Source: Epithemia pelagica
Taxonomy: Eukaryota; Protista; Bacillariophyta
Direction: 5' to 3'
Assembly: GCA_946965045.2 (NCBI GenBank)
Contig: OX337234.1
Location: forward strand, 3,038,001 to 3,102,000
DNA: 64,000 bases
The notes under the pieces are model-generated. The model was not told the DNA's origin and did no database searches. It worked only from the letters and a program-made list of their open reading frames with translations. This document shows positions 11,271 through 55,982 of this stretch, in pieces. Numbering within the stretch: the first letter of the stretch is position 1; every line of letters starts with the position of its first letter. The translations under genes were made by a program, and so were the position numbers.

Positions 11271-11314
11271 GTGACAAGGGAACCCCTGCGGCGGTTAACG
11301 TCTTGTGCGCGCAG
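11271..11314 (-). promoter_or_regulatory. Conserved upstream element of DNMT copy A
   Basis: The minus strand carries CTGCGCGCACAAGACGTTAA (11295-11314), identical over 20 bp to 55941-55960, followed by TGTCAC (11271-11276). Confidence 0.7.
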
Positions 11315-11727
11315 GTGCAAGGAAATTAGAAGTTATCGGACCGGCTCACGTTTTGGGGGATATGTGCTCACGGCACACGGCACGCACACCGGCCGAAACA
11401 TGTCCTCGCACAAAATGTCGTTGGCAAAGTCTCCAGACATCAGAATCAGACCGCTACAATACGACCTACCGGTAGATACTACGACAGATCTTCGTCAATC
11501 GTCACTTCCGCGCTCTATTTCCCTACCTAGGCGATCATAAACCTAAAAGCTTCCCCCATCTTTGTTATGAACTTCTTTTGATGCGATATCAATCATGCAT
11601 CGCCTCTAGACAACCGATCCAATAGAACCGTCCCAGATTGTTCAGGAATTCCCCCATGCTGTATGAGCCCAACTTTTCGGGAATTCAATCCCCTGTTAGA
11701 CACTCAGGCTAGGTCATCCCAATCAGT

Positions 11728-14430
11728 CTATGCTTGGACCTTGTCAGTGTCTGCCTTTTGATAGGACTGCCCAATGCTTTGAGCCACAGCTGTGGCAAAG
11801 TTCACGGGGACGGCGTTTCCAATCAGTTGTTTCTTTTGGGGTGCCGACCCACTAAACTTGTACGTAAAGGGAAAACTCTGTATCGTGGCACGTTGTCGAA
11901 CCGACATGCATTGATCCAATACCTGATGCTTTATAGGTCGTTGACACCGCACCGTGGGTGCAAAATCTTGGCATGGACCGAAAGTATCGCACTCGTTCTT
12001 CAGTGTCGTTTCTTCAATGCTGTGATCGTCCACGGCAATTTCAATGCCATTCTGCATAATATGGACTCGGCCATTTCCTTCCACGGGGTCAATACCTTCC
12101 AACGGAGCAAATGCATCCTTAACTGTGAGTGTTCGTGAGGCTGGCGGTGGAACGGGTGGTAGCGGGACAGTGACACGAGCGGCAAAGATCCACACACGAC
12201 AACGACTTTGTGGATCGCCATAGTCTTTGGCATTGGCAACAAAGATTCGAACTTGGTAGTTCATCAAGAGAAGTTCTGCCACAATTTTTTTTGGATACGA
12301 AATACATCCAGGTCGAAGCATGCCAGGAACGTTTTCAAGTGAGGCCGTCGTGGGCTGAAAATATTTGATCGCTCTCACAAATTCATACGATGCTTCATTG
12401 TTGCTGAGGTCATTGGTCCCTCCCGTCCGATTCGCTGCCGAAAAGCCCTGACACGGGGGACTTGCATGAATGTGATCAATATCGTGCGGCTGGGGATACC
12501 CTTTTGTTTTCCTTTCACACTTTTTCAAGAAGATCATGACGCTCTCTTCGTACGTTTCCAGGTCGTGCTTTAGTCCCATAACAGAAAAGTGAGACTTGTT
12601 GCGTTCCAGGGTGGAAATGGCATCGGGATTCAGGTCAACGGCATATTTTGGGATGAGACCAGCTCGTGCGAATCCCAGTGCGGCGCCGCCACCTCCTGAA
12701 AATAGATCCAAAACAGTAGGATGATTGCCTATTGGTTTTATTGGATCCATGCATTCCTCAGTGACGAGTGAAAAGGATGCCTGATATCCTTCACCATGTT
12801 TCTCCTGATTGGGATTAATCTCATATACATACGCAGGCTTGTTGTCTAGAGATACCTTGTCTCCCAATTCTCGTAGACGGGCACAGAGAGTAGTTTCTTG
12901 TTTCCAAAGGAGTAAGTTTTTGGAGGGGTGTTGGTCAATCCACCGTTCATCTTGTATGACTTGATTTGCCATTTCGGGTCCCACAAACGTGTCATCCAGA
13001 CAAATATACATAACATCACAATAGGCGCAATAAAACTTGCGTTTGGCGTCCAAATCAATTCGTGATATGGTGACGAGAAAGCCTTTTCCTTGCATTTCAT
13101 ACTGAAAGGTTTCGCCCACCATAAAGAGTCGATCATCGATGAAAATACTCTTTCCATCGTCGCTCAGTTTTGGTCTGCTGTGTCCACGTTTTGGAGCAAA
13201 AGATGACGAGGATGAACGCGATGAATTGGGCCAGTGATGTTTCAGTGTTGATTTGGTGGTGGAGGATTCTGGTTCCTTCAAAGACGCAATGGGTTCCTCC
13301 TTCACATCTTCTTGTAGAAAGTCATCTGAAAGAACGTCCGTTGATTCTAGATCCGAGCAGTCTGGATCATCTGAGGTAGTTGCCTCGTGCTCGACGTTCT
13401 GATTGTTCTCCGTAATGTTGGTAGGGGTCGGCACACCTTGTGTCAAGTCAATCAATTCCTTCTCCGTCAACTCTTCGTCTTCATCCACCACCAGGTAGTC
13501 CTCGTTGGCGATTTTCTCCTTCCAGAACTGTAATCGCTTCGTATGGTTGGTGGATCCATTGTTTTGGTCGTTATCTCTACTTTTGGTTTGTTCTGGCACG
13601 TTATTGTCATCAAATTTCGTCGGATTTCTGTCATGCTCTTTATTGTTGGTATGCTCATCCAAACATTGATCTTTGGAATCAACATCGGACATTTCCGGTT
13701 GATCACTTTCATTGGATTGGTGATCCTCGGCGTTCTCGTGATCCTCATTTTCACGCGCAGTGCAGTTGCTTTGGTTCGTGGATCCATTGTTTGGGCCGTT
13801 ATCTCGACTGATGGTTTGTTCTGGCACGTTATTGTCATCTAACTTCGTCGGATTTCTGTCATGCTCTTTCGTGTTGGTATGCTCATCTATACATTGATCT
13901 TTGCAGACAATATGGGACATTTCCGGGTCATCACTTGTGTTGGATTGGTGGTCCTTGGCGTTCTCTTTATCCTCATTTTCACGTGCAGTGAAGTTGCTAT
14001 GGTTTTGTGACAAGGAAAAGTGTCGGGTCGTACTTTCCAGGTCGTTACTGCTGTTTAGGTTGCTGTTATGGTTACTCTCATCTTTTTGTGGTTCCCCTGT
14101 ATGACTGGTAGCTTGTTCTCCTGGAGCAAGACTGGGGGTGGTCGTCTCCTTTGTGTTTGTTGTGCAAACCGGATTGGATTTTTTGGTAGACCACATGGAA
14201 TCCAACGTGGATTGGCGTTTGTCCCATGATGCAACACTAGCCGTGTCATTCGTGTTCGATTGGCTGGACACTTTTATCCCCAGCCAGTCCGATAATGTTT
14301 GTTGGCGTCGAGGCGCTCCATTGGGGGTATCATGATGGATTGGTAGGCTCGATCGTTTTCGTTTCTTTTGTTGCTTGGAGGATGATGGCGTCGTCGTGTC
14401 CGATCCTGTCGGGGCTTTGGCGGCCATCAT
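11728..14430 (-). CDS. DNMT4: DNA (cytosine-5)-methyltransferase, RID/Masc1 (DNMT4)-like, copy B
   Basis: DLFSGGGG, HASPPCQGFS, SLENVPG, DYGDPQSRCR, SVRQRATIQSFP, QLIGNAVP. The computed start at 14610 is GTG; ATG 14430 (MMAAKAP) is preferred because the shared promoter motif lies between the two. Confidence 0.88.
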   Translation of the reverse strand: MMAAKAPTGSDTTTPSSSKQQKKRKRSSLPIHHDTPNGAPRRQQTLSDWLGIKVSSQSNTNDTASVASWDKRQSTLDSMWSTKKSNPVCTTNTKETTTPSLAPGEQATSHTGEPQKDESNHNSNLNSSNDLESTTRHFSLSQNHSNFTARENEDKENAKDHQSNTSDDPEMSHIVCKDQCIDEHTNTKEHDRNPTKLDDNNVPEQTISRDNGPNNGSTNQSNCTARENEDHENAEDHQSNESDQPEMSDVDSKDQCLDEHTNNKEHDRNPTKFDDNNVPEQTKSRDNDQNNGSTNHTKRLQFWKEKIANEDYLVVDEDEELTEKELIDLTQGVPTPTNITENNQNVEHEATTSDDPDCSDLESTDVLSDDFLQEDVKEEPIASLKEPESSTTKSTLKHHWPNSSRSSSSSFAPKRGHSRPKLSDDGKSIFIDDRLFMVGETFQYEMQGKGFLVTISRIDLDAKRKFYCAYCDVMYICLDDTFVGPEMANQVIQDERWIDQHPSKNLLLWKQETTLCARLRELGDKVSLDNKPAYVYEINPNQEKHGEGYQASFSLVTEECMDPIKPIGNHPTVLDLFSGGGGAALGFARAGLIPKYAVDLNPDAISTLERNKSHFSVMGLKHDLETYEESVMIFLKKCERKTKGYPQPHDIDHIHASPPCQGFSAANRTGGTNDLSNNEASYEFVRAIKYFQPTTASLENVPGMLRPGCISYPKKIVAELLLMNYQVRIFVANAKDYGDPQSRCRVWIFAARVTVPLPPVPPPASRTLTVKDAFAPLEGIDPVEGNGRVHIMQNGIEIAVDDHSIEETTLKNECDTFGPCQDFAPTVRCQRPIKHQVLDQCMSVRQRATIQSFPFTYKFSGSAPQKKQLIGNAVPVNFATAVAQSIGQSYQKADTDKVQA
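13549..14004 (-). repeat. In-frame tandem duplication, 2 x 228 bp (76 aa), in the N-terminus of DNMT copy B
   Basis: NHSNFTARENEDKENAKDHQSN...NNGST followed by NQSNCTARENEDHENAEDHQSN...NNGST; units at 13777-14004 and 13549-13776. Confidence 0.93.
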
Positions 14431-14530
14431 GCCGTATCCTGAATTTGCTCTTATGCTGTTCGTCTGTGAACTCGATCCAGTTCCATCTCGAGACGAACAA
14501 AATGTCTTTTGCTGCTCCCTCGCTGCGGCT

Positions 14531-14557
14531 GTGACAGCCCAAAAAATCTTGTGCGCG
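14531..14557 (-). promoter_or_regulatory. Conserved upstream element of DNMT copy B, in a divergent promoter shared with URB2
   Basis: Minus strand CGCGCACAAGA (14547-14557) followed by TGTCAC (14531-14536). Confidence 0.6.
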
Positions 14558-14805
14558 TGGGGTGGTGCTGCGAAAACCATCCCCCCATGCCCCATGCTCG
14601 CGCCCGTCACGCCCCGTTCGCTCTTTCGAAACGACGCAGGTCAGACGCCAGAGATCCTTCCAACACATCAACTACAGTTCCAGATCCACCATCCATCAAT
14701 CGCATCCCGTTTTCTTGAACAGGAGACAAGATCAAGCAAGTAAAGGAACAGAACTGCACTAATACCTCGGAGTTTTCTTTCTCCGTCAAGGGTAGAATAT
14801 CAGAT

Positions 14806-17800
14806 ATGCCAAATGCGCTCAAGAGCCGGAAAAGTTCGAGTACCAAAAAGAAGAAGCGCAAGACAAGAGAACCATCAAATGACGACGAGGATGATCATGA
14901 ACTAGGCAAGAGTGAGAACGACACACCCTCCATCGAGCGGATAACCGTCACCGAATCCCAAGAACCACAGCCCTCCGTATCGAATGAAAATGGCAAAAAG
15001 AACGCATCGTTTCCAATACAAGCGCCATCACAAACGACAGATTCATCCAAACCGACTCCTTCGCCCCTCCATGAACCGAAACAGGATCCGATGGAAGAGT
15101 TGCTTCCTCATTGTATTGAATTTTCCGATGGCATTCACAAGAACAAAAAGAGTCACGGTCCAACGGTTCAGGACCCCTCGCGCAAAGGCTTTGTTCGCTC
15201 GGTCCATGTGTTGGTCGAGTATTTAGAACAAGCACAGGCAGACGAAAAGCAACTACAACAAGAACAACAACAAAATGAGATGACGAATCCTAATCCAACG
15301 ACAACGAAGGACCAACTTCTTGGTCGCTCTATGAAGGAAACTATTGCACACTTGTTTTTCCCTTGGGTGGTTTCGCAATTGCAGTTTCTCCAAGGAGCCC
15401 CTCCTTCTCCTGCCACCTCTTCGGTCATCACAACGACGACGAAAGCCTCTACAGCACCAATTCTCCAACAAGAGCTGGACCGTCCCTTTCTGTATCGCTG
15501 TTTCCATATTTCGTTGCGGACCTTGCTGCCGGTGGGATCTTTGACGGAAACATCAAGACAAAGCCATTCTTCTTGGTCCTCCCACTTGAAGAATGGGAAC
15601 CTCAGTGTCGTATCCGCCATTTTGACGCAAAGTACCTTGGCCAAACTCATTCCACCCCTTTTGGAGTATGCGTTGCAAGCGCCAATCCATTCAGAGAAAA
15701 TAGCCACGAAAGCATCAGTGAAGGAAACCCAAACAGCCAGACAACTCTACAGTGCCCTCTTGTCTTTTCGCGATTCGGTTCACGAATCCATCTTGTTTCG
15801 ACCCACATTGGAAAAAGCACTCGGGTCCTTGGTTGTGCCCTTAGCCGATTCAATGTCGATTGGATTAACTGCTGGTGTGTCCTTGGAGGAAACCTCATTG
15901 TCCACGGACATGTCTCTTTCGTTGACTGTCACCACGTTGCAATGGCTGCATACAACAGTCCTGCCACGAGGAAATCCCAAAACAACCTTTCACTTGCTCG
16001 TTCAACCCAGTATCCTTGCGGCCCTTTCCAAACTCTATTACGCTGATCCATATCGCAATGGCCAGAACAAAGACAACATGTTCCCGCCAAATGCGCTCAA
16101 GAGTTCCTCTGGCATCCTCCCTCTGGATAAGAACCAAACGGACAACCGTTCTTTCGCATCTTCAGACTCTAATAATACAGTGTCTTGTTGGATTCATAAA
16201 ATGGTGGCTCATGGTATGGTCAGTTGTCACCACCATTTGGAAGGATTGTTGGGTATTCTCTTGCAACGCAGACGACGAAGACAACAAGAAGGACCGCAAA
16301 ATCAAGATGTTGCGACAGATAAAGACTATCCATTGGAAACGAACAAAGCCTTTCGAAGTTATCAAGAGGAACTGGTCGCTCTTTTGGAGTCGGGCTTTCT
16401 CTGGCCCAAGGAGAGTTCCACTGCACAGGACGAGAACATGAACACTGATACGATGGTGGTGACGCAAAAACAAATACTGGCATGTATACGATTTCTTCCA
16501 GTGGTTTGGCAAGAGTTTTTGATACAATTCGATTTGTTGAAACTCTCGAAACACGGCCAACACGTTCAGAAGAAACAAAGGACCGATGCGTCGTCCTCCT
16601 CTGCCTTGACCTCGTCTGCCAATGCATTTGAATTCTTTCAACTCATGGCAACGCCACTCCTTTGTTTGTTAAACAATGAAGATGATCATACATTGGACCG
16701 TGTCATTGCTCTGGAAGCCCTGTCTCAACTGACCCGTCTCTTGTTTGTACACAATGTCTACATTGCCTCGCAAGACGATGCAATGCAAAGTCAAACGCAC
16801 TTTCTGGAATCCATTGTTACGTCACTCTTGGAAGTTCAACCGCGTCATCCCCGCATGGTGGACCAAGGTAACGCATCCATCCCAACCAAGACCCCGTCAG
16901 AGGAGAGTGCCTTGGCTCACAGTATTGGTACATTGAAACACTTGTTGCAATTGAATCACCACTTGCTACATTCGCGTTTGGTCCCTGTACTTTCCATGGT
17001 TTGTTCTTTTTCCGTCCCCACCAACCCGGTACATCGAGATGACGACCACCCAACAAATCCCGCTTCCGATATGGCTGTCGACTTTTTTGTGGGTCTCGTG
17101 GACACGTATCAGAAATTGCGCCAGTCCACCTCTCTGGTCCACTCGGTGTTACAAGTCATGAGTTCCCTGTCGTCTACCTCCCAGAAACACGGTGATGGAA
17201 GCAAGGCCTTGCTCTGGCTCTTGCGTCGCGCCAATGTTCAAATGGCATGGTCCTCGGCCATGCACCATAGTCCTTCGAGTGAGATCCAGACCCTGTTGGA
17301 GACGTTGAGTCAGTGGTTTTCTCAAACTGCTTCTCTCGACGACAAGATTGGGGATGGTCCGCTGGACGCTTCTATGGAGAATAATGAAGAGAATGAAAAA
17401 ACTAAGAGTAGTGAAAAAGCGAACAACGAGGGTGCTTTGGATGACACCTTGGACCTTGCCACGGAATTCACAGTGTCACTTTTACAGTCAGTACCAGTAA
17501 ATCAGACCACAGCTTCGAGCGTTTCCGAGTTGGTGATGAAATTTAATCGCTCCGTCGTAGCTCCTCTCTCCGCTCATCAATCTGCTACTAGCGTAAATGC
17601 CTCTGCTTTGAAACTATGTGCTTGGTTGATTCGTCTGCAAGAACAATGTGCTTTCTGGCTCGGACGGCAACATGAATTGCTGGAGATTCCGCCAGGTGTT
17701 CAGGACCAAGTGCGTAGTGCTTGCAATCGATGCAAAAAGGAAACCAAAGATGTGCATACGTTTGATTCAGAGCCTGATAAGGAAGCTTTAGTACTTTTGG

Positions 17801-20274
17801 TGTCCCATCGAATGGAACAAATTGCACTCTTGCTTCACAATGAACAGTTGGCTCAAGTACATGCTGATGAAACAATTAGCCACGAGAGTCATGATAAATC
17901 TGGTCGACAAACAAGCTTGGAAAAGGAAGGAAGAGATTTGGCTGCTCTATTGACGAGCATGGCAGGGAACGACAAAGAGGCCTCTTCTGACGGTTCTTTG
18001 CCCAGTGGGTGGATGAGTATTGCACCTTGTGCTCATGTTTGGACCGCCTATGCCACGGACGAAGCATTGAACAATTTTCTGTCTCATGTTTTAAAGGCCC
18101 TATCAAGAGAAGCGATTTCGGAACAAAGCAAAATAGAGCAAAAAGTGGCAATGAACCTCGTCACTGATATTGCATTTCTTGACAATCAACGAGTTGGATC
18201 CATACTTTTCCAAATTGCACTAAACTGTGCGATCGATTGGATGGCCGAAGCATACGCTCTGGACAAAGGAAAATGGGCGGACTCATTAGCAAGCTTGTCC
18301 AGAAGATCACAAGGATCATTGCTAGACGTTGACGTTTTCGAAAAAGAGATGGAAAATTGCAAACTGGATCACAAAAAGGCAGACGCGTCTCTAACGTTCA
18401 ACGCCATCCTATCAGACACAGCTCGTCTTCTTCAATTCACCAATGGACTTCCCTCCAGCTTGCTTGAAGCTGGGGATGTGGCGCTATCCTTGTGCACCAC
18501 GGCATGGTTGGAATGGGTGATATTGTCCAACATTGGCAAAACCAAGGTTGATACCTTTAACAGATCCAGCATGATGTTGGCAAGTCCGATTCGTTCTCTT
18601 CTGGAAAAAACACTTGCACTTTACACAAGTCGGAAATGGGAAAGTCATTCGACAGCAAACACGTCGACCGGTGATTTTCTGGAGGGGCAGTTCACCTATC
18701 TGAACTACATGCTGTCGTCAACACAACAACTACTTTCTCTAAATGACAGAGAAGAGTCTCATGAAGGCATGAAAGACTTTATGATGGCAAGTGAAAGTCT
18801 TCTGGACAAGCTCTGGTGCCACCTTATACGAATGATTGCAATTGACCAAGATGGCTCGGGGAATCATCTTGGTCGCGTGGTAAATATGGCGGAAGTGGAA
18901 CAAAAGATCTCCTCTCCACGACGTTCTTCTTCGTCCAAAAGACCAAACCTAATCATGGGATTGCTGACCATCAAAAGTTTACTTTCCGGTGCGGAGCGTG
19001 CACGGGCAAGTTTCTTGGGCAAGGACCGCGATAAGCAGTCAGGCTTTTTGCTCAATCTATGGCACCAATGCTGGAAGTCCTTTGGATCGTTAACCAGCCG
19101 TTTTGCCTTTGGATTGACACACAAAGAGCTTTCCCGTATGGTTCTGGGAGATTTGGTGCGATGGATGAAACATTGGGGGATTCGGGAAGAAGGAGCTCTG
19201 ATACGCCTTCAAGATTTAGTTAAAAAGAATCTCAAAGAGTTGGATACTGGAGACAATGCCCAAGCCCGTCATACTCTCCATTATGGTCTTGCATGTCTTG
19301 TACAGATAAATCCTTCCCCGTCACAGGTGGCAATGATACTGGACGAGCTCACCAAAGAGACAAACGACAAGCGTAGCAAGAGTCTACTCGAGGCAACCTT
19401 TTGCCAACTTTTGAAAGACCTCGAGTCTACCGACTGCTACATGGCTGTTCAAAGGTGTCTTTCCTTGCGACGTGATTCCAAGTCCCCAAAATCATTGTCT
19501 GTAAGTTTGCGTGTTTTCACACTTGTCATGAAGCTCAAGGAAAATGATTCCAGTGTCATTACACAGGTTGTCAAGGACAAAAGTCAGGAAATCTTGTCGC
19601 TGGCTCTACATCCATTGTACCCCTTCCGACAGAATGAAAGTTGTGACCATGTGGCAAGAAATGTTGCCTTGTGGCAAGATCATGTTCAAGAAGCGAATCA
19701 TCTACTATGTGCTCTTATTCGACGCAAAGACGTCCTGGTTCTTCAGGAAAAGGATCTTGCCATCATTTTGTCCTATTTGAATCTTGTACTTAGTGGGAAA
19801 GCCTTGGAGGAGAAGAAAGAGGACACTTCAGACGTCTCAACACCTGTCTTTGTCAGCTGCAGCCGAACGCTTTTGCTGTTGTTGCAACGATGTGCGAAAC
19901 AACTGTATGCATGTGTTCCTCTGGTAATCTCGGTTTTGCACTCGTTCTGGATTTCCTCCATGACAAACATGATGGACAAAACTGATATTGCTCTTTGCGG
20001 CAACGAATTGTGTCGATTGTCCGAGGCCTTGGTTCCTCACAGAGAAGTGTACAAGAAACACGTCATTCCTCTGTTGCTGGACTTTGTGCGCCGGCTTGAC
20101 CAACAATCCCTCTTGGTCAAGAATGCACTGTTACCGTCAGTTTATTGTTTGTTGGATCTTTTGACCATTCATGAACAACGACAACTCAACGCACTCATGG
20201 ACACCACGTCCAAATCCAACTTTCGATCCATCTACCAAACCTATCAAAAGCTGTTTGCCTACAAAGGGCAGTAG
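14806..20274 (+). CDS. URB2: Nucleolar pre-ribosomal-associated protein Urb2/Npa2
   Basis: 1822-aa helical protein ending in the Urb2 C-terminal signature LVPHREVYKKHVIPLLLDFV...LLPSVYCLLDLL...NFRSIYQTYQKLFAYKGQ. Confidence 0.85.
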   Translation: MPNALKSRKSSSTKKKKRKTREPSNDDEDDHELGKSENDTPSIERITVTESQEPQPSVSNENGKKNASFPIQAPSQTTDSSKPTPSPLHEPKQDPMEELLPHCIEFSDGIHKNKKSHGPTVQDPSRKGFVRSVHVLVEYLEQAQADEKQLQQEQQQNEMTNPNPTTTKDQLLGRSMKETIAHLFFPWVVSQLQFLQGAPPSPATSSVITTTTKASTAPILQQELDRPFLYRCFHISLRTLLPVGSLTETSRQSHSSWSSHLKNGNLSVVSAILTQSTLAKLIPPLLEYALQAPIHSEKIATKASVKETQTARQLYSALLSFRDSVHESILFRPTLEKALGSLVVPLADSMSIGLTAGVSLEETSLSTDMSLSLTVTTLQWLHTTVLPRGNPKTTFHLLVQPSILAALSKLYYADPYRNGQNKDNMFPPNALKSSSGILPLDKNQTDNRSFASSDSNNTVSCWIHKMVAHGMVSCHHHLEGLLGILLQRRRRRQQEGPQNQDVATDKDYPLETNKAFRSYQEELVALLESGFLWPKESSTAQDENMNTDTMVVTQKQILACIRFLPVVWQEFLIQFDLLKLSKHGQHVQKKQRTDASSSSALTSSANAFEFFQLMATPLLCLLNNEDDHTLDRVIALEALSQLTRLLFVHNVYIASQDDAMQSQTHFLESIVTSLLEVQPRHPRMVDQGNASIPTKTPSEESALAHSIGTLKHLLQLNHHLLHSRLVPVLSMVCSFSVPTNPVHRDDDHPTNPASDMAVDFFVGLVDTYQKLRQSTSLVHSVLQVMSSLSSTSQKHGDGSKALLWLLRRANVQMAWSSAMHHSPSSEIQTLLETLSQWFSQTASLDDKIGDGPLDASMENNEENEKTKSSEKANNEGALDDTLDLATEFTVSLLQSVPVNQTTASSVSELVMKFNRSVVAPLSAHQSATSVNASALKLCAWLIRLQEQCAFWLGRQHELLEIPPGVQDQVRSACNRCKKETKDVHTFDSEPDKEALVLLVSHRMEQIALLLHNEQLAQVHADETISHESHDKSGRQTSLEKEGRDLAALLTSMAGNDKEASSDGSLPSGWMSIAPCAHVWTAYATDEALNNFLSHVLKALSREAISEQSKIEQKVAMNLVTDIAFLDNQRVGSILFQIALNCAIDWMAEAYALDKGKWADSLASLSRRSQGSLLDVDVFEKEMENCKLDHKKADASLTFNAILSDTARLLQFTNGLPSSLLEAGDVALSLCTTAWLEWVILSNIGKTKVDTFNRSSMMLASPIRSLLEKTLALYTSRKWESHSTANTSTGDFLEGQFTYLNYMLSSTQQLLSLNDREESHEGMKDFMMASESLLDKLWCHLIRMIAIDQDGSGNHLGRVVNMAEVEQKISSPRRSSSSKRPNLIMGLLTIKSLLSGAERARASFLGKDRDKQSGFLLNLWHQCWKSFGSLTSRFAFGLTHKELSRMVLGDLVRWMKHWGIREEGALIRLQDLVKKNLKELDTGDNAQARHTLHYGLACLVQINPSPSQVAMILDELTKETNDKRSKSLLEATFCQLLKDLESTDCYMAVQRCLSLRRDSKSPKSLSVSLRVFTLVMKLKENDSSVITQVVKDKSQEILSLALHPLYPFRQNESCDHVARNVALWQDHVQEANHLLCALIRRKDVLVLQEKDLAIILSYLNLVLSGKALEEKKEDTSDVSTPVFVSCSRTLLLLLQRCAKQLYACVPLVISVLHSFWISSMTNMMDKTDIALCGNELCRLSEALVPHREVYKKHVIPLLLDFVRRLDQQSLLVKNALLPSVYCLLDLLTIHEQRQLNALMDTTSKSNFRSIYQTYQKLFAYKGQ

Positions 20275-21275
20275 TGAGAAAAGGTCGCATTTGTCCTGTC
20301 TCAGTATCTATGTTCCTGGAGGACGAAACCCTTGGAAGATGTTGCCACGACGACTAATCCAGTCGGCAAGTCCGACCAACAACGAAATCACAATGTCTTG
20401 CTTGTTCGTGTTCAAGAATCCTCCTCAGAGTTTCTTACCGTGTTGTCATTACACGTTTGCCAATTGTTGAGTTGGTTTTGTCTGCACAAACGAAACGTAA
20501 TCATACGTCCTCTTGAAGCAACCTACACATGGATGAATCTCCAACCGCAAAGTGTTTCTGTTCAGGCACCTGTGAGAGAGATATTTCTATTAGAATCACC
20601 TCATTCCATTTTGTCACCGCGACAAATACAACAGTGATGGCGTTGCTGTCTCTCAGTCGTACTGCTGTCCTGTTCACGAGAATTCAAGGACTGTGGAGAG
20701 GGGAACGTGACGATGGACCGTCGTCTACGTGGTGCTCTTTTATAGCTCAGAGCGACTGCATCGAATGTGATTCAAGGATGTTTCTCTTGGACAGCCTTTG
20801 TGTGGTCGTAGGTTGTTTGAAGATTGTCAAAGCTGTACGTCGCTATGCCACAACGAAAACCATGAACCAGCCCAGTGCCAATGTTCGATTCGCTTTCTTC
20901 GTTTGGATGGAACTTTTGGTCATCTCGCGCATCACATGGTCACCACCACAAATTTGTGAGCTCCTCGTGCATTCCAGATTCTGGCACAGGGCCTATGACA
21001 AATCCATGATGTTCCAAGTTCCAAGGCTTCCCATTGGGGTTATCTGACGTGTAGGTGGTGTGACAAGCCGACTCTTGCCCATGGCTGAAGTTCAAAACAA
21101 AAAACGAACAGAAAACCGAACGCTTCGCATTGGAAGGGTTGTTCACTTAAGCGCCTTTTCAACGTCATTCCATTTTTGTTCAGTCGCGTTTCAGTTGTCG
21201 GAGAAACCGACGGACAATTGTGCTCATAAAACAATCCTAACGCAAAATCAAAGACGAATAGTTCTATACCACACC

Positions 21276-22583: not shown

Positions 22584-23252
22584 AGTGATCGGGCCCGCCA
22601 AAGAGGGTCACAACACCCGAGTAGGTTAGTGAATAATTACATTTGATACTTACTCAAAGCGGACAGCAAATGAGTAACATCCTTTTGCTCCTATGAATGA
22701 TCAATTTGACGGTAGAAATCAAGAACGATAGAGTTATTCATCTTCTTGCCTTGTAAGCATCATGCTACCCCGTCTACCTGCTACGTGTGTGAATATCATG
22801 CTATTTTTGCTATCATAGCTAGGAGTAAATGATAGGAGTACGCCTTGGAGTATAGAGGAGTAGGAGTAGGTAGATTGTCCGACAAAGTCAGCTACCTTGA
22901 GCGGGTAGCTTGGGTAGCTCCACAGCCTCTCCAAATGAGATTTTCGTGTGAAATCGGAACAGCTCGTCTGGTATAGATAAATAAAGGGCTTAAGTATATT
23001 CTGATCTTTGCAAGATGACGTACTCGTAGTATACGAGATTTCACTCGTAACTCACGAGAAGTTTACGAGAGGAGTATAGAGTAGGGAGGCTTAAAAAGGG
23101 CAATTATCATCATGAAACCCAGAACGTACTACCTCTACGAGTACGAGTGTATGTATTGTAGGTTGTAGGTGTTGTACGAGTACGAGTAGGTTGTAGGACC
23201 TGTTCCCTCATCATATTCGGGGGCTTAGGCTCTAGCAGGAACAGACAGCCCA

Positions 23253-23273: not shown

Positions 23274-23416
23274 GTAGATGCAAATAAGATCCATGACATT
23301 GGGGACGGATCTTTTTCCGCAGTCAGAAGTCAGAAGGTGCTGCCAAAGATTCTTGTCCGATATAGTTCGCAGTGTTTCCCATAGCCACAAATCTGGTCGG
23401 CACAGTTTCTCGCACC

Positions 23417-31084: not shown

Positions 31085-31089
31085 CCACA

Positions 31090-46841: not shown

Positions 46842-47143
46842 CTGTCACTCGGTCGGGGGATGAGAAGAGGCTGTGGCATTCCTGGCACACCGCAATCGAG
46901 TCTGAAGCAACGAAGGACGCATTAGGGGGGCACTACCATGTACCAACAGAAGCACAGTACAGCAAAGGCCACCTTGTCATTTCGCATAGTATACCGAACT
47001 CTAGCATAGGCGTAGAACCTTGGTGTGTTGGCCGTGCAGACTCTGTCAATGGACAACATCTCGCATATGGTTTTGTGGTTTGTAATGTGTGTCTTTGTTG
47101 GCTGTTGTTCTTATTGCTTCATCGGTCCAGCAGTACCTGTTCT

Positions 47144-48439
47144 TCATTGGGCTGTCGTAGGTTGTGCTGCTGGTTGCGACGTCACTCCCTGTACTCCAAA
47201 GGGCAAAGCAGTGGGATGAATCCATTGATTGCAAATCCACTTTTCTCCCGCATGGACAGGCAATCCAGCATGCCGCAGACGAAGATCGGCATGCAAAAAC
47301 ATGTCGGGCGTATAGGAGTACGATGACGACGAGGAGGAATCGGGCAAGGCGGGTTTTTCCACGGTATTCCAAAAAAAGAGGGCCGAACCCGCTTGGGCCT
47401 CGACGCAAAGGCCTTCTTTTTTTTCGTCGTCGTTGTCGTTTCCAGTGCCGGCAATTCCGGGAAACCATGTTGCTCCACCCACGGTCGGAGCTTGTAAATA
47501 GACCAGACAGGTGGCCAATCGTCCTCGACAGGTCAAGTCATTAAAGGAATTTTGATGATCGGTATGCAATTGAAATTCTTGTCCTGGTTCATACCGACAG
47601 ACTTGCAAATTTTCCAAACAGGCCGGTGGCAAACCGCTCACCCGCGAGACTTGTTCCGCCAAGGCTTGGAGGAGAACACGTTGTCGTGGTTGTTGTTGTT
47701 GGTGTGTGTTGGACTTCTGTCTTGTGGACGACATGGTTTGGTCTTGGTCCAGTGTGTCATCGTCCTTTTTGGCCGGTTCTTCTTGTTCTTGTTTCAACCA
47801 CACGGTGGAACTGGTGCGGGACGAGGATTGAGTGAGTTTGGCACCCGTGGTGGATCGACTCAAGAGGAATTGACCGTCGACGGGGTCTCGTGCTTCTTGT
47901 GCCGTTTGAATCAACTCTTGACAGGCCTGCAAGGGGACCAGGTCGTGAATTTGAATCAAGGGCGGTTCGACCGACAGCACGTGAATTCGTTGTTTCCACC
48001 GAGCCACGCTGCTCATTTCGTCCTGATTGCTGTCCCGAATCGTCGTCGTAGCCGTAAAGTCATTACTCTCATTATCATCATGATCATAATCACAATAATA
48101 ATTGTCTTCGGTATGGGCCAAGCAAGTGGCGCAAAAGTGTCGAATGTCGTCGGCCGATACGGCCGGTGTATGCCAAAAGTCGTGCAAGGGATGACAGGAC
48201 GGATCCGGCGTCGTAGGGGTAGTCGTAGTAGTTGTCGGTTCGGTGGTGGTGGTGGTGGTTGCCTCGTTGGTGGTTGTCGCAGTCGCAACGGTGGCCTCGA
48301 GACGACGGGTCGAACCGGCAGTGGTTCGCCCCCGAGTCTCGCTGGTCGGCAAGACGACGACAAAGGAAGAAGTGGGCGTCACCACCATCATCATCCGGAC
48401 GACACTGGCGAGAAGCCAAACAACAACACGAGGAACCAT
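47144..48439 (-). CDS. Prolyl 4-hydroxylase-like 2OG-Fe(II) dioxygenase, possibly plastid-targeted
   Basis: LENLQVCRYEPGQEFQLHTDH, RLATCLVYL...GGATWFP, HAGLPVHAGEKWICNQWI. The N-terminus looks like a signal peptide ending TSS|F plus a transit peptide. First plausible ATG at 48439. Confidence 0.88.
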   Translation of the reverse strand: MVPRVVVWLLASVVRMMMVVTPTSSFVVVLPTSETRGRTTAGSTRRLEATVATATTTNEATTTTTTEPTTTTTTPTTPDPSCHPLHDFWHTPAVSADDIRHFCATCLAHTEDNYYCDYDHDDNESNDFTATTTIRDSNQDEMSSVARWKQRIHVLSVEPPLIQIHDLVPLQACQELIQTAQEARDPVDGQFLLSRSTTGAKLTQSSSRTSSTVWLKQEQEEPAKKDDDTLDQDQTMSSTRQKSNTHQQQQPRQRVLLQALAEQVSRVSGLPPACLENLQVCRYEPGQEFQLHTDHQNSFNDLTCRGRLATCLVYLQAPTVGGATWFPGIAGTGNDNDDEKKEGLCVEAQAGSALFFWNTVEKPALPDSSSSSSYSYTPDMFLHADLRLRHAGLPVHAGEKWICNQWIHPTALPFGVQGVTSQPAAQPTTAQ

Positions 48440-49138
48440 GGTGAGATGATGGACCGAAACGAAACGAGAGGTTGTTGTGAAGGAGGGACTGTCTGTCTTG
48501 AGTACAAGTAGTAGAACCAAAGGTAAGGAGCACAAGGGGCTTGATTGACAAGACCCAAATGCTACAAAGAGAGAACGAGAGCGAGAGAGAGAGAGAGAAG
48601 AAACGAGACGATTTTGACTTGCGTGTTTTATGTTACGAATGGCACTGTCTACCAACTACCTACCAACCTAATACCACACAAACCAAGAACGTTGCTTTTT
48701 GTTCCTACGTGGTATCTTTCCATGATGGCAGATGGTTCTCTTGCGGATGGTGGTGGCACTTTGTTCTCTCGTCGACTCGTCGACACTCCCGACACGAAAC
48801 CACGTTGCATGTGGTTTGCCAAACTCGTGACGAGGCTCGTTTTGGTAGACGCAAAAAGAACCACCGCCTTTGGAGTTCGGAAGCTCTTGCCCCACCATGA
48901 CAGACGGTGCGTACGTATGTGGTGGGGCACGTCGACGACGGAAGTTCCCCAGAAAATCTCACAACTTGTACCGAGTACCGAGTGAGAGAAAACGGTATGC
49001 AAAATAATGTTTTAGTGCTCTATGGAAATAATTTTCGTTCATCGGTCGTTGGAGCTGGACCTATCCAGTTGCAAATCAGGGTTGTTTGACGTGCACAAAG
49101 ATGAAAGAAAGATAAAGACTCAAGAATATCGCATGAGG

Positions 49139-51526
49139 TTATTGCGAATCTTGAGTCAAGAGATACTCTTGTAGGTGCTTGTGGAACCGCAGATTCTGGT
49201 CTCGTTTCTCAGCTGCGGCCTGTGCGTACGCAGGATCCTTTCGTTGCCGCACCCTTTGGTATCGCGCCTCATGACGACGCTTTTGACGGTCTTCCGGAGC
49301 CCATGGTGGCGTGTTGCTTCGATCGACATGATGGCCCCCCAGTTTGCGGAGGTATCGGCCACCACCCGCAGAACCTTCGGTGTTCAAGGGCTGCGGGGGA
49401 TTGTTCGCACACTCCTCTCCACAACAGGTACAACAAGCGCCCAGTTCACAGACAACTTCGGGATTGGACACGGCACAATCGGCTTCCAAGACTTGCAAAA
49501 AGCCACGAGGCCAAACAATGTTACAAATTTCTGGCGGCATGGCACCCACCAAATCATTGGCTTCTAATTCCAATCGATCCATGCTCGCCATATTGGCCAA
49601 CTGAGATGGAATTTCTCCATTGAGTTTGTTTCCGTACAACCACATTTGCTTCATTTTAGACAAGTTGCCCAATTCCGATGGGATAACTCCCGTCAAACCT
49701 AGTTTGGTAAAGGAAAGGGAGGCCAAATTGGAATACTGGCCCAGTTCGGTGGGAATACCACCTCCAAGGTCGGCGTTATTGTCAATCCACAGTTCCACCA
49801 AGTCAGGCGTTTGATCGGGAGTCGTCCAAATAGTCAAATCGCCTGTCAAAAAAGAGTTGTCGGCATACATGAATCGTAGCTTGCTCAAATTAGCAATGGA
49901 TGCTACCAAGGTCGAATTGATACGATTGCCACCAATATCCAAATAAGCCAAGTTTTGCAAGTTGGCAAAGACTTGGTCGCGCAAGGGACCGTAATAAAAG
50001 GCATAGGACAGATCCAAAATTTCCAAATTCACGAGGTGGCCAATGGCTGGATGAATTCCATTATAATAGAATCCCGTATCGGCCAAATCGAGTTCCCGAA
50101 GATTGGACATTTCTCCCAACCAAGCGTTTCCAGCATCTCCATCATTGAACACCCAGGCTCTGGTCAGGACCAACACCGTCAAGGAATCCTTGAACAATTG
50201 TGTTTCGGGAGGAAAGGTACCTGTCAAAAAGTTGTAGGATAAATCAATTTCGGATACTTGACCTTGCTCGGTGCATTGAATTCCATACCAGAGACATTCA
50301 TTTGGTTCCGTCAGCCACCCATCTTCTTGGAGCCACCCTCGCGTGACCGCACCTTGACCCAGCGCGAGGCGAGTAAACTCTGTTTCCACCCAATAGGTCG
50401 CATGGTAGATGCATGCCAAGACAAAGCGTTGAAGGGTGCGCGAGGTATCATGCAACTCGGGATCGTGGTTCTCTTCGAGCCATTGCATGGCCTTGTACTG
50501 ATACGAGTCCTGGTCCAGCAGAGACAATCCAAAATCGGGCAATCGGGGTTGGAGAAAGAAGTAGAGTTCCGACGTGGGAGCATTCGATGGGTCCGCAGAG
50601 GGCAAGGATGACGGCACCGAAGATGTCGACGGCTGAGTCGAGGGAGTCTTGGAGGGAGAGATGGATGGTTGAGAGGACATGGAGGGTTGAGAGGAAGGAA
50701 CAGCCGATGTAGAGGGTGTGGACGAGGGACGTTCTGATGGTTTCGACGTTGATGGTTCTTGCGAAGGTATTCTTGATGGGAACTGCGAAGGACGGAGTGA
50801 AGGCTTGAAAGAATTGGAGGGTTCCTGAGATGGTGGTTGTGAAGGTAATCCCGAAGGAAGAGAGGACAAAGATGGCTCTTGCGAGGGTATTTCCGATGGG
50901 ACAGCAGAGGGTACCACGGAGGGCTCAAAGGAAGACGATGGTTCCTGCGAAGGGGTTGTCGATGGCCGTAACGAAAGAGATGGTTCTTGAGATGGCCGCA
51001 ACGATAACGATGGTTCTTGAGAGGGAAGATTGGATGGTTCGATTGAGGGTTCAGAGGAACTAGATGGCTCCTCCGAAGGTACAAGAGACGGCATGGATGT
51101 AGCCGATGGTTGTGATGATTGCGAAGGAGTAGCGGATGGAGCAGCGCTCGTGCTCGGTTGCCCTGAAGGAGCCGAGGATTGAGATGGTAGCTGTGAAGGA
51201 ACTTCGGATGGCATGAAGGAAGGAACGCTCGAGTCAGTTGGTACCGTAGAAGGTGAATTTGATGGCTGATCAGAGGGTTCTTTTGAGGGAATATCCGACG
51301 GCGGATTGGATGGAATCCATGAGGGGAGATTGGATTTGGATGGCTGATTGGATGGAAGCAATGAAGGAAATACGGAGGGAATTGCACTTGGTATTGTGGA
51401 GGGAGATTCCGAGGGTATGGATGTCGGCTCTTGTGCTCCTATTATTGGCACCATGGCGCACCATGTGAACAATAAAATTGCCACGGAGGAAGATCCTCCC
51501 TTTGTACGTCGCATCCAATGTGTCAT
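49139..51526 (-). CDS. Secreted leucine-rich-repeat protein with a long PSxxPS stalk
   Basis: Signal peptide, about 290 aa of PS-rich repeats, YKAMQWLE...LQRFVLACIY, WL..PNECLWYGIQC cap, LxxLxLxxNxLxGxIP repeats, Cys-rich LEADC...CTCC end. ATG at 51526. Confidence 0.92.
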   Translation of the reverse strand: MTHWMRRTKGGSSSVAILLFTWCAMVPIIGAQEPTSIPSESPSTIPSAIPSVFPSLLPSNQPSKSNLPSWIPSNPPSDIPSKEPSDQPSNSPSTVPTDSSVPSFMPSEVPSQLPSQSSAPSGQPSTSAAPSATPSQSSQPSATSMPSLVPSEEPSSSSEPSIEPSNLPSQEPSLSLRPSQEPSLSLRPSTTPSQEPSSSFEPSVVPSAVPSEIPSQEPSLSSLPSGLPSQPPSQEPSNSFKPSLRPSQFPSRIPSQEPSTSKPSERPSSTPSTSAVPSSQPSMSSQPSISPSKTPSTQPSTSSVPSSLPSADPSNAPTSELYFFLQPRLPDFGLSLLDQDSYQYKAMQWLEENHDPELHDTSRTLQRFVLACIYHATYWVETEFTRLALGQGAVTRGWLQEDGWLTEPNECLWYGIQCTEQGQVSEIDLSYNFLTGTFPPETQLFKDSLTVLVLTRAWVFNDGDAGNAWLGEMSNLRELDLADTGFYYNGIHPAIGHLVNLEILDLSYAFYYGPLRDQVFANLQNLAYLDIGGNRINSTLVASIANLSKLRFMYADNSFLTGDLTIWTTPDQTPDLVELWIDNNADLGGGIPTELGQYSNLASLSFTKLGLTGVIPSELGNLSKMKQMWLYGNKLNGEIPSQLANMASMDRLELEANDLVGAMPPEICNIVWPRGFLQVLEADCAVSNPEVVCELGACCTCCGEECANNPPQPLNTEGSAGGGRYLRKLGGHHVDRSNTPPWAPEDRQKRRHEARYQRVRQRKDPAYAQAAAEKRDQNLRFHKHLQEYLLTQDSQ

Positions 51527-52456
51527 TATCACGTCCTACTTCTTTTCTCGTGGATTGGGTGTTTCAGCGCTTCTTCTCAAAGACCAAAGAATAGGGACGA
51601 GAGGGAAGATACGAGATCAGCACATGTCTCAATCTGGTGTTTTTCTGGGTCATTCCGATTGTTGTAGAAATTTTCCTTTTCTCCCTCATTCGCTTGTCAC
51701 CGGCCACAAACGCTGCAAAACTGCGCGACTCTTCGGTCCAGGAACTCCAACCAAAAGATGAGGGGAGGCGAACCTGCGTCTTTAGGCCGACAAGTCTGCC
51801 GGTGACACTCCTAACTATTTTTGGTGAAAGAGCTCGTTCTCGTGCGCAACGGAGCGACGGCCGACCTCAACGGCTCGTATTCAAAGATTCTCTACTTGCA
51901 AAACGGTGGACATGCGTATTCTTCGGAGTATGAAGCGACCGACGGTCGCCTCATGGGGACGCATGATCCGTGACTAATACACGGGACCCAATCCACAAAG
52001 GAGTGGCGGTTGCCGTTGACAAGATTCTTCGCCTTGAAACTGGCGAACCACAGAGCGGCCAGCTCATCCGGCTTTTGGATTTTGGTGCCTACCACAGATG
52101 ACACACACACTTCTCTCTTGGTTTTTGTGTGTTTTGGGTTGTCCGCATTCATTCAGTTTTGGATTTGGATATCATCCCCCTCTTGCTCTTGCCAGATTGA
52201 TCGACAACTTTGTTGAATCTGACAGAGATTCTCTTTAGATCTCTCTCTGGTTATTCTTTTTCAAGAGAGGATAACAAAAAGAGAGACAGAGAGCGAACGG
52301 AGGACACGATACTGCGAAACAGAGGGCAATCCAGATTTGCTGGTTGGAAGATTCGATTGCGGGTCGTTCGATCTACTACGACATTCAAAAAAGAAGACAA
52401 AGCAACAACAACAACAACAACAACAACAGCAGTAGAGTGAGAGTGGATGCCAACGA

Positions 52457-55132
52457 ATGACGGATTCGATACAACCAGCAGAGGCCACTCCATACGACCA
52501 TAACAATCACCACCACCACGACGAAGAACGAGTGGGATTGCTCGCTTCGGTAGCCGCCATTCTACAACCCCAACAACACCACCATACTAGCAACAGTAGG
52601 ACGGTTTCTGCCAGGTCGTCTTCGTCGTCCGAGTCGGACTCGAATGACTCGATTGTTTCATCCACAACGGGCTTGTCGCTTCCTCCCATTATGGATGCCA
52701 ATCCTAGTACGAATCACAACAATGGACGCATTCGTCTTTCACTGGTTCCGAATGATTCGGAGGATTCGAATGCCGTGCCACTGGGAAATCGGTGGGCGGC
52801 ACCCTCCACTCGACATAACGGTGGCAGCAGTGGCAGTCGTCGTTGGACCCGTGGCTGGTTTTCCTCCACCACCACCGAGTATGCTCCCGTGGTCCACACT
52901 AGCGGTACGACCCTGTCCACCTCCTTTCCCAGTACCAGTACCTTTATGGTAGACGAACATGACGACGACCAACCAGAACAACAACAACGAGAAGAAGATA
53001 TCGGAATGGAGGAAGCATTGGTTTCGTATCAACGCAGCCGATCGCGATCGCCGACACGAATGGCCAAACCACAACAAGAGCCACACTCGTCACCACAACA
53101 ACCACAACGATCACGACAGTCACCTTCTTGTTCGTCCTTGTCGTCGTCACGATGGAAATTGGTCTTGATTCTGGGAGTCTTGGTCTTTTGCATGACCCTT
53201 GTCGTCTCCAATACGTGTTGGACCTGTACAACGTCAAAAACGTCAACAACAAGTCGTCGCTGGAACTGGTTTGGATGGTGGAGTGGTCGTTCGGGATCCA
53301 CCAACGACAACAAGAACAACCCAACAAATACTACCGAACGGACGTTTTTGCAAAACCAATTTCCCCAATTGGTCTGGCAGCCGGCCTGTCCCGAAGCACC
53401 CTACGATTATATTGGTCGATTGCAATTTTGTCAAGGTCCCACGGACCAATTCAACAATACCTACTATGGTTTTCGCTTGCAGTCCAATCAATCGTGTGGG
53501 GGATGGTCGGGACCTCATGGTCCACCACCCAATCCCGTGATTCGCATGCAAGCGGGGAAACGATATCACTTGATTCTGGAAAATACGGCGCCCCAGGATG
53601 CCACCAATTTGCATTTGCATGGCTTGCACATTGCCAGTTATGGACCAGCCGACAATGTCTTGACGCAATCCGTGGATGCCGGCAAGTGCATTTCGTACCA
53701 CTATCACGTCCCGGCTCATCACATGGAGGGTGTCCATTGGTATCACACACACTTGTTTGGACGGACCTTGGCCCAAATCAATGGCGGAGCCTTTGGACTC
53801 CTGCTCATTGATCCGGCAGACGAGAACGAGAACGACGATACCGACCAGGACGAAACCGAGTCGAGTCGGAGTAGTAGTAGTACTACTACTACGACGACAA
53901 CAACCACGACGACAGCCCCAGGACCCCTCGCACGAACCGCAACCATACCTCCTCGACCCGACTTTGTCTACCATCAACAATTCATTGTCCTGTTCACCTC
54001 CAAACGCTGGGCTCCCGAACCGCATTCCGATACTGTGGTTCCACCATCCTCCTCCCGGCACAAGAAGGTACCACATACAACCGTCAATGGCTTGCCCGTG
54101 GGAACCGCCACCCTGGACGTACCGGCCCATCAATGGACGCGACTCAGTCTCTTGGTGGTGGATACCAAAGATGCCGTGGCACGGCAAGTTCGATTCGATC
54201 CCCAGGCTTGTCACGTTCATGCCATTGCCTTTGATGGCGTGTGGCGCAATCGTGTCGGCGGGGAATCGGCCCCCGAGTCTCCCGTCTTTTCGGTGACGGG
54301 AGCCAGTCGGTTGGATGTCGCCATTCAGTGCCGTCGCGACAGTGGCATTTGGTATCGTCCCACCTACAGCGACGATCCGACTCTGCAAGAAACCACTGTC
54401 GAGAAAGATGAACCCGTACTGACGTTAAAAGTGACGGGTCACAACAACAACAACAACGACGATGATGACAATGGTGCATTGGAACTGTGGATCCCTCCGC
54501 GACCCAGTTATTTGCAATCTCTCCTGACAGCTTCGGAAACGGAGGAATTGCACTTTACCGCAGAGGACACCCTTGCGGATGGATTTGAAACCAACACGTT
54601 GCGCGTCAATATCACACCCTCCCAAATCAATGGTGTCGCCTTTTACGTTGGCATTCCGCCCTTGGCCACGTTGCATTACGGAACGGTCCAACAATGGAGT
54701 TTGGACTATACGCAGTATCATCCCTTTCATTTGCATGGTCATCACATGCAAGTCGTCTCGCCCGGTGGCTGTGGCAATGTCTATCAACAAGGCGAATGGT
54801 TTGATACCATTGCCGCCGGCTACGCCATGGATATCCAAACGCCCTGCCGGGTCCGCTTTCGATTGCGGGGCGACGATGGAGCCGCCGGTCCCGTCCTCTT
54901 TCATTGTCATACCCTCGACCATGAAACCGCCATGGCGTGGGTCAATGTCGTGAATCATGACGACGACAATGACAACAACAACGACATCAACAACCACAAT
55001 CATCCACATCATCACGTGGGCGATGCCACCACGGCCGCCGGATCCAATCCCAATCCATGGCAGGCTCCGGGGGCACCGCAAAAACCATTGGCGCAATGCC
55101 AGGCCGATGCGTGTTACCAACACAACCATTAG
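52457..55132 (+). CDS. Membrane-anchored multicopper oxidase
   Basis: All four copper-binding motifs: HLHGLH, WYHTH, HPFHLHGH, FHCHTLDHETAM. One TM helix follows a disordered N-terminus. Confidence 0.93.
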   Translation: MTDSIQPAEATPYDHNNHHHHDEERVGLLASVAAILQPQQHHHTSNSRTVSARSSSSSESDSNDSIVSSTTGLSLPPIMDANPSTNHNNGRIRLSLVPNDSEDSNAVPLGNRWAAPSTRHNGGSSGSRRWTRGWFSSTTTEYAPVVHTSGTTLSTSFPSTSTFMVDEHDDDQPEQQQREEDIGMEEALVSYQRSRSRSPTRMAKPQQEPHSSPQQPQRSRQSPSCSSLSSSRWKLVLILGVLVFCMTLVVSNTCWTCTTSKTSTTSRRWNWFGWWSGRSGSTNDNKNNPTNTTERTFLQNQFPQLVWQPACPEAPYDYIGRLQFCQGPTDQFNNTYYGFRLQSNQSCGGWSGPHGPPPNPVIRMQAGKRYHLILENTAPQDATNLHLHGLHIASYGPADNVLTQSVDAGKCISYHYHVPAHHMEGVHWYHTHLFGRTLAQINGGAFGLLLIDPADENENDDTDQDETESSRSSSSTTTTTTTTTTTAPGPLARTATIPPRPDFVYHQQFIVLFTSKRWAPEPHSDTVVPPSSSRHKKVPHTTVNGLPVGTATLDVPAHQWTRLSLLVVDTKDAVARQVRFDPQACHVHAIAFDGVWRNRVGGESAPESPVFSVTGASRLDVAIQCRRDSGIWYRPTYSDDPTLQETTVEKDEPVLTLKVTGHNNNNNDDDDNGALELWIPPRPSYLQSLLTASETEELHFTAEDTLADGFETNTLRVNITPSQINGVAFYVGIPPLATLHYGTVQQWSLDYTQYHPFHLHGHHMQVVSPGGCGNVYQQGEWFDTIAAGYAMDIQTPCRVRFRLRGDDGAAGPVLFHCHTLDHETAMAWVNVVNHDDDNDNNNDINNHNHPHHHVGDATTAAGSNPNPWQAPGAPQKPLAQCQADACYQHNH

Positions 55133-55473
55133 TAATGACAGGTGCGGGATGCAACAACAACATTACGTGCAGGAGAAGCACTCACATGTATATATATTAT
55201 AGAAGAAAGGCTCCCATCGCAACGTTGGTCGTTTCTTTTTTTGAACCAACAGACGTACCTTATTGCTCTGGTATTTTCCGTTTTGTGTACATACACCAAT
55301 GCAAAAGTTGACCGTCGAGAGTCAGAAACGGATAATATGAGATTGTCCTTTGGAGGGAACTATGAGGCTACCGAGTTGAACAAACGTTGACGAAAGGAAA
55401 GAAAGAACCCAAGCCACTACGATGGTAGCGCTACCACTTGCCCATGGATACTAGAGACTGGCTTATTGTGATC

Positions 55474-55731
55474 TCCGATAACAAGCACCCAAAGGACGAC
55501 GATGACACCAATCCCGGTGGCTCGACCAAGTCGCAACAAGAAGATGTCATTCATTCTCAACAACACAATCACTATCATTATGGGATTCACCTCACCTATT
55601 TGGGGAATGATGAACGACAACCATAGAGAGTCGACAAGCATGACGCGGAACCAAACTACCTACCTAGAGAGAACGAAAGTGCCAATCAATACCTCCATCG
55701 ACCGCACAAGGTAGCACAGCCATTCTACAGG
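55474..55731 (+). pseudogene. Truncated inverted copy of the DUF1769 gene's 3' end and 3' UTR
   Basis: Matches the reverse complement of about 25576-25873. Encodes STKSQQEDVIHSQQHNHYHYGIHLTYLGNDERQP* versus STKSQQEEDAIHWQQHNRYHFGIQLTYLGNGERQP*, and shares UTR blocks such as GAGAGTCGACAAGCATGAC, AAGTGCCAATCAAT and CAGCCATTCTACAGG. Confidence 0.9.
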
Positions 55732-55940
55732 ACCTTAGTCTCCGTCTTGCTGGCCGCATAACTGCGAGTAGTGTAGGAGTATAAGATCTCTGGAACATAG
55801 ATTATTGTTATGATATCCGTATTGGAGTACCTTGCACTCCATATTAGAGGATTGACCTAGGCGCGACTACCATGCGCCGAAGCACAGACGGAGGAGGAGT
55901 ACCTCCACTCCGACTCCGAGCGCGAAAGGACTGCATCCCC

Positions 55941-55982
55941 CTGCGCGCACAAGACGTTAATGGCTGTTCCGAATTTTGTCAC
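55941..55982 (+). promoter_or_regulatory. Conserved upstream element of DNMT copy C
   Basis: CTGCGCGCACAAGACGTTAA (55941-55960) followed by TGTCAC (55977-55982), about 220 bp before the ATG. Confidence 0.7.

Follow-up and report, generated by a model that had tools for sequence, protein, structure and literature searches.

Non-coding elements that stay conserved after gene duplication are known, for example, from the histone and globin gene families. The maintenance DNA methyltransferase (DNMT) genes of animals and plants have E2F-driven promoters, and Myb/MSA sites are known as mitotic elements. Cores of the form TGTCA/TGACA are bound by TALE homeodomain proteins, yeast Ndt80 binds the middle-sporulation element gNCRCAAAW, and both of these factor classes act in sexual or meiotic programmes. 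The subject of the present analysis is a pair of short sequence blocks, Box 1 and Box 2, upstream of three DNA methyltransferase genes (A, B and C) in a 64-kb stretch of the genome of the diatom Epithemia pelagica (contig OX337234.1, positions 3,038,001 to 3,102,000; this whole stretch is called the window here) and of a fourth paralogue, D, on a second contig. Diatom DNMT4 enzymes have a single DNMT domain and are kin to DNMT1 and to fungal RID, some of their relatives carrying a chromodomain (Hoguin et al., PMC9998398); they are widespread and their function is unknown (PMC9998398). The initiator, an element of the transcription start, has the consensus YYA+1NWYY in mammals and YCAYTYY in the stramenopile Phytophthora, and neither the oomycete INR+FPR pair nor FPR is represented in the diatom T. 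pseudonana (PMC3599244).

Box 1 is built around the core CGCGCACAAGA, and Box 2, which follows it on the coding strand, around TGTCAC. Like the footprints seen between histone or globin paralogues, the boxes are short upstream blocks that are identical, in sense orientation and at a similar position while their surroundings have been randomised, which implies a shared trans-acting factor. Unlike those cases, the family concerned is the diatom DNMT4-type clade, and the motif matches no consensus tried. Box 1 resembles the E2F-driven promoters in being a GC- and CpG-containing proximal element before DNA methyltransferase genes, which was the basis for the idea of cell-cycle control, but it does not fit the E2F consensus TTTSSCGC. 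It is probable, in our assessment, that the two boxes together form a promoter-proximal DNA module that was inherited, has been kept by selection in all four paralogues and may serve their co-regulation by a common factor. Judged from sequence comparison, the whole is a genuine upstream module, under selection and specific to this family, and its general kind is known; it amounts to a lead rather than a demonstrated mechanism.

Architecture and occurrence of the boxes

The genes and boxes in the window are the following (lengths in amino acids, aa, or nucleotides, nt).

8628-10973, minus strand: gene A, intronless C5 DNA methyltransferase, 781 aa
11728-14430, minus strand: gene B, intronless C5 DNA methyltransferase, 900 aa if the start is at 14430; alternative ATG at 14204
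56182-58101, plus strand: gene C, intronless C5 DNA methyltransferase, 639 aa
11301-11318, minus strand: Box 1 of A, GCACCTG-CGCGCACAAGA; the 21-mer identical to C lies at 11295-11315
11266-11276, minus strand: Box 2 of A, TGTCAC, 24 nt after Box 1, with GTCACACTTT in common with C
14547-14568, minus strand: Box 1 of B, GCACCACCCCA-CGCGCACAAGA
14531-14536, minus strand: Box 2 of B, TGTCAC, 10 nt after Box 1 and within the palindrome GGCTGT-C-ACAGCC
55933-55954, plus strand: Box 1 of C, GCATCCCCCTG-CGCGCACAAGA; the 21-mer identical to A lies at 55940-55960
55977-55993, plus strand: Box 2 of C, TGTCAC at 55977-55982, 22 nt after Box 1, with the second GTCACACTTT at 55984-55993

The core CGCGCACAAGA has exactly three matches in the window (11301-11311 and 14547-14557 on the minus strand, 55944-55954 on the plus strand), and each lies on the coding strand before one of the three DNMT genes, 127-338 nt from the first ATG (the initial annotation gave the same positions and a distance of about 120-330 bp). 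Dinucleotide shuffles gave an expectation of 0.03 copies per window, none of 100 shuffles reached three, and a search of the window with one mismatch allowed brought no further site. The relaxed two-box pattern CACAAGA-N8-30-TGTCAC likewise has three sites in the window, all of them the DNMT ones, against 0.15 expected. When both strands of the window and of the loci compared with it below were scanned (372 kb in all), the core with at most one mismatch followed by TGTCAC was confined to these DNMT promoters. Chance as the origin of the boxes is excluded by these two excesses over expectation and by the 372-kb scan, and a test for a dispersed repeat found no other box copies in the window or the loci. 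The TGTCAC that was said to follow each core by 10-24 nt does so at the gaps listed above, and paralogue D, with a gap of 18 nt, falls in the same range. The presence of TGTCAC in all four upstream regions carries no significance by itself, as 85% of Markov-resampled sets share some 6-mer, and its significance comes only from its fixed position after Box 1.

Ungapped comparison extended Box 1 beyond what was first noted, to about 22 nt (GCAYCMCCC-NN-CGCSCACAAGA). Box 1 of B, C and D keeps a single register over these 22 nt, with 18-19 of 22 positions identical in each pair, and the upstream half of Box 1 of A is 3-4 nt shorter than in the others. From the start of the box to the first ATG there are 338 nt in A, 127 nt in B, 238 nt in C and 142 nt in D, and Box 1 of B sits in the 375-nt divergent promoter that this gene has in common with a Urb2-like gene starting at 14806. 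The reading frame over Box 1 and Box 2 is not the same between copies; conservation is therefore at the nucleotide and not at the peptide level. Within the DNA examined the boxes are conserved, lie upstream in the sense orientation and are restricted to these genes.

Few diatom cis-elements have been defined, and this one, of about 22 nt plus 6 nt, is private to the four paralogues in the DNA examined. Our literature search found no paper that describes the motif. Box 1 could serve as bait for its regulator, and the pattern may be specific enough to define a regulon genome-wide.

Paralogue divergence and selection

The proteins of A, B and C are 44-49% identical over the whole alignment and 46-54% identical in their best local blastp segments; with D included, the four paralogues show 39-49% protein identity. 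At their four-fold degenerate sites identity falls to 35-45%, against some 26% expected from composition alone, so that neutral DNA is near saturation. It is therefore not credible that 11 or 21 identities in a row were left by neutral change, and the box appears to have been held by selection. The core is identical at 11 of 11 positions in A, B and C and at 10 of 11 in D. Between A and C the identity extends over 21 of 21 positions (CCTGCGCGCACAAGACGTTAA), and no other exact match in the two genes or their upstream regions is as long, the coding maximum being 14 nt. In blind pairwise local alignment of the upstream regions, Box 1 was among the top matches in five of the six pairs, reaching 19 of 22 between C and D.

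Several claims of the initial annotation can be set against these results. Its proposal that the element is kept by selection is strengthened by the state of the four-fold sites together with the independently found paralogue D, which has both boxes. The exact run between A and C is real and is one base longer than the 20 bases given. The statement that the remaining upstream DNA cannot be aligned fails for A and C, which also share GTCACACTTT and GAAGGAGTACG in collinear order, and the protein N-termini, said no longer to align, do so in part over the N-terminal halves (blastp covers residues 187-779 of A vs 54-633 of C). One further feature belongs to this comparison.

11105-11115, minus strand: third collinear A-C island, GAAGGAGTACG; the C copy is at 56154-56164 on the plus strand

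The sequence AGGAGTACGCG is also found upstream of D, but 5' of Box 1, and the GAAGGAGTACG/AGGAGTACGCG island is probably not part of the module but a motif found generally in the intergenic DNA of this genome.

The perfect A-C 21-mer exceeds the exactness that most factor sites require, and two additional exact islands flank it in collinear order. One might see this if the identity were non-functional and due either to chance or to common ancestry, with short tracts of gene conversion between the promoters of the paralogues renewing the match. We regard such a non-functional origin as very improbable. Four-fold sites are near saturation, there is no flanking identity to seed conversion, A and C are 45 kb apart, and B and D keep the core and Box 2 only, as constraint predicts and conversion does not. 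Under constraint, the module would have been inherited from a single ancestor of a lineage-specific DNMT4-type clade, and purifying selection would have held it in the four surviving paralogues as the remaining upstream DNA diverged beyond alignment.

Paralogue D on a second contig

A protein search with C led to three relatives on another contig (loci L001 and L002). This second contig (ctg1356l) and that of the window (ctg1360l) are from the same ENA assembly, ERZ21939226, and the two are collinear at 95.5% (L001) and 93-97% (L002) identity, which suggests that the second contig represents either the other haplotype, or a homeologue, or a very closely related strain. In its copies of A and B both boxes are unchanged, the spacer of B having two substitutions and a 2-nt insertion, and the unchanged boxes are consistent with constraint. 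At the position of C the second contig has a different paralogue, D, of 794 aa, with 43% protein identity to C and 35% identity at four-fold sites.

55469-58498, plus strand: C segment (gene, promoter and 3' flank), without homologue at the same place on the second contig, where D lies (L002 5275-9013)

Homology breaks off and resumes at window positions 55468 and 58499, corresponding to L002 5274 and 9014. The upstream region of D, although unrelated to that of C, has CGCCCACAAGA with TGTCAC 18 nt later, 142 nt before the ATG. Since A, B and C had set the hypothesis in advance, the probability of finding these boxes in 726 nt can be put at about 3e-5 by our own arithmetic, and we take the boxes of D as an out-of-sample confirmation of the module at the sequence level.

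The difference between C and D could stem from reciprocal loss from an old tandem pair or could be an idiomorph-like allelic difference. The presence of C and D, each with its own promoter, at the same position on contigs that are 93-97% identical, together with an inverted pair of AGGAGTAC that brackets the C coding region (56156 on the plus and 58153 on the minus strand), also brings to mind a mobile or recombining DNMT cassette of which the boxes would be an end or a recombination signal. Such a cassette would explain the exchange at this one locus but is scarcely credible: the segment ends have no terminal inverted or direct repeats, there is no relic of C beside D or of D beside C, the boxes lie 475-585 nt inside the segment and not at its ends, AGGAGTAC is enriched throughout intergenic DNA, and the flanks of A and B are collinear between the contigs. 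Downstream of both C and D there is a 19-nt island, CTGCACTATGAAA[G/A]CATTC, identical at 18 of 19 positions (window 58379-58397, L002 8867-8885); the segment around it cannot otherwise be aligned, and from the island to the point where homology is regained there are about 100 nt in the window and 130 nt in L002.

A number of points weigh against a selected module with a common factor. Neither the spacing of the boxes (10-24 nt) nor their distance to the ATG (127-338 nt) is constant, and D has a substitution within CGCG. There are four independent copies only, all of them related by descent, and the unchanged boxes of the second contig are not significant alone at a local divergence of about 10%. 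Extrapolation from the window shuffles to a genome of about 60 Mb gives some 30 copies of the bare 11-mer by chance. Finally, conservation upstream of DNMT4 orthologues, proposed earlier as a check, does not extend to eight more distant diatom DNMT4-like genes (L003-L006, L008-L011), where Box 1 is absent; the distant homologues examined include those of Epithemia, Fragilaria crotonensis and several metagenomic diatoms, and all are distant, with no relative of intermediate distance among them.

Possible function of the boxes

If the module acts as a promoter element, Box 1 would be bound, in a sequence-specific manner, by a transcription factor through which all paralogues are jointly driven or gated, and its length would leave room for one large site or for two adjacent factor sites. 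A common Box 1 factor would in turn make the paralogues co-regulated, and shared regulation of A to D is plausible. The TCA core of Box 2 is kept in all four copies, and because it fits the initiator, Box 2 may lie at or near the transcription start, which would place Box 1 between about -15 and -45. In A and C the sequence of Box 2 is TCACACT, in agreement with the mammalian consensus YYANWYY, and a pyrimidine-rich tract comes after it; Box 2 of B and of D, in contrast, agree with that consensus at 6/7 and 5/7 positions, and none of the four fits the oomycete form. Box 2 thus possibly acts as an initiator.

All copies are in the sense orientation, 106-338 nt from the ATG, a possible leader length, and no gene lacks an upstream ATG between Box 1 and its main ATG (one or two each in A, B and C), the leader of D having two minimal ATGTGA open reading frames (ORFs; L002 5918-5923 and 5988-5993). 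These features would suit boxes that work at the RNA level, as part of the mRNA leader, where a protein bound to them would control translation or stability together with upstream ORFs. We consider this unlikely, since the consensus RNA secondary structure has no pairs (RNAalifold), the window has no Rfam match, and the variable box spacing and the C/G-rich, double-strand-like composition better suit DNA sites; the sense orientation is uninformative because it was inherited by duplication.

The initial annotation suggested timing by cell cycle or sexual stage as the purpose of common control. The four promoters have no canonical E2F or Myb/MSA site in common: a search for TTTSSCGC gave one TTTCGCGC-type site, in C only, 24 nt before Box 1, the MSA core YAACGG does not occur in any of the four, and CHR sites form no pattern common to them. 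Timing in the cell cycle or at a sexual stage has no support from these results, and the sole basis of the sexual-stage idea is that diatom DNMT4 has been described as kin to fungal RID (PMC9998398).

Two resemblances to sexual or meiotic factor sites serve as leads only. Box 2 contains TGTCA, as TALE sites do, and GCACAAGA in Box 1 is one position off the Ndt80-type NCRCAAAW. The presence of TGTCA in Box 2 is uninformative, since TGACA occurs 3.1 times per kb in the window. Should Box 1 or Box 2 be a TALE- or Ndt80-type site, action in a sexual or meiotic programme would fit a RID-like role, again as a lead only. In a stronger form of the idea, the boxes would be the operator of a dedicated switch by which all RID-like DNMT4 genes come on at a single stage of the life cycle, such as the time before meiosis, or, as Box 1 carries one to three CpGs, a methylation-sensitive site that lets the enzymes act back on their own promoters; we hold this to be quite unlikely. 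If true, it would provide the first regulatory handle on diatom DNMT4. The promoter module itself is of moderate interest as a handle on an enzyme family of unknown role, and it gives a simple way to ask whether the paralogues act together at a stage.

Gene family and distant homologues

Genes A, B and C each encode a full PF00145 domain (E values 1e-38 to 1e-45) with catalytic motifs I, IV, VI, VIII and X intact; in A these read FAGAGG, PPCQGFS, ENV, QSRSRVW and GNAVPV. Their relatives are diatom proteins, including Cylindrotheca proteins with PF00145 and PF00385, and the best relatives of solved structure are DNMT1 and chromomethylase (CMT). As this matches the published description of the family (PMC9998398), A to D probably belong to diatom DNMT4. 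In a FastTree phylogeny A, B, C and D form one clade (SH-like support 97) with an Epithemia clementina protein as its sister (100), and the other diatom homologues, including the chromodomain-bearing Cylindrotheca proteins, fall outside the A-D clade.

The nearest match to Box 1 among the distant homologues is in L008, where CGAGCACAAGA, with one mismatch, lies at -160 and is followed after 46 nt by GGTCAC, a resemblance too weak to be counted; the CACAAGA matches in L005 and L009 are probably within mis-called coding sequence. On present evidence, the module would thus be specific to the DNMT clade of this lineage. The Epithemia clementina locus has three GTCACA within 25 nt, about 300 nt before the probable ATG, a hint only that Box 2 may be older than Box 1. 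At this same locus (L005 4480-4830) a direct repeat of about 200 nt duplicates the probable gene start, and the gene probably begins upstream of its annotated start at 5001. When JGI metagenomes were scanned for the 20-mer, no related diatom loci came up; the one match, in an unrelated retroelement-like ORF fragment (L007), is at about the chance level.

Start of gene B and other observations

The motif had also been taken to place the start of B at 14430. Box 1 does not fix this start, because a -1 indel on the second contig (window 14204-14430 vs L001 6577-6804) brings the ORF that begins at the counterpart of this ATG to an end after 49 codons, and the gene caller placed the start there at the counterpart of the ATG at window 14204. 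If B begins at this downstream ATG, its Box 1 would be about 350 nt upstream, like that of A. Either the first ~75 residues are dispensable, or the assembly is in error at the indel, or translation really begins at the downstream ATG.

The motif AGGAGTAC occurs seven times in the window, against 0.92 expected, and is enriched across intergenic DNA. GGAGTA forms clusters and inverted pairs, including TACTCCT-N6-AGGAGTA in the leader of A, and it litters the DNMT upstream region of Epithemia clementina (L005). Places of AGGAGTAC and GGAGTA are 22821-22868, 11106-11126, 47314, 55895, 56156 and 58153 in the window and 3960-4560 in L005, and the motif is probably a general intergenic or promoter motif of diatoms. 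Another sequence, TTCGAAAGAGC, has two copies only in the window, upstream of A (11191-11201) and of B (14620-14630), both on the minus strand; it lies after Box 1 in A and before Box 1 in B. It is probably not constrained, because it is altered in the B copy of the second contig.

A Box 1-like site with two mismatches, TGCGCACGAGA, followed by TGTCAC 30 nt later, was seen between a leucine-rich repeat gene and a Cu-oxidase gene (window 51838-51848, L002 1633-1643, both on the minus strand). It is kept on both contigs and is most likely due to chance. The N-terminal region of gene B (window ~13540-14005, minus strand) contains a tandem duplication of about 76 residues (…TARENED…EHTN.KEHDRNPTK.DDNNVPEQT…), which also shows as off-diagonal blast matches to L001.

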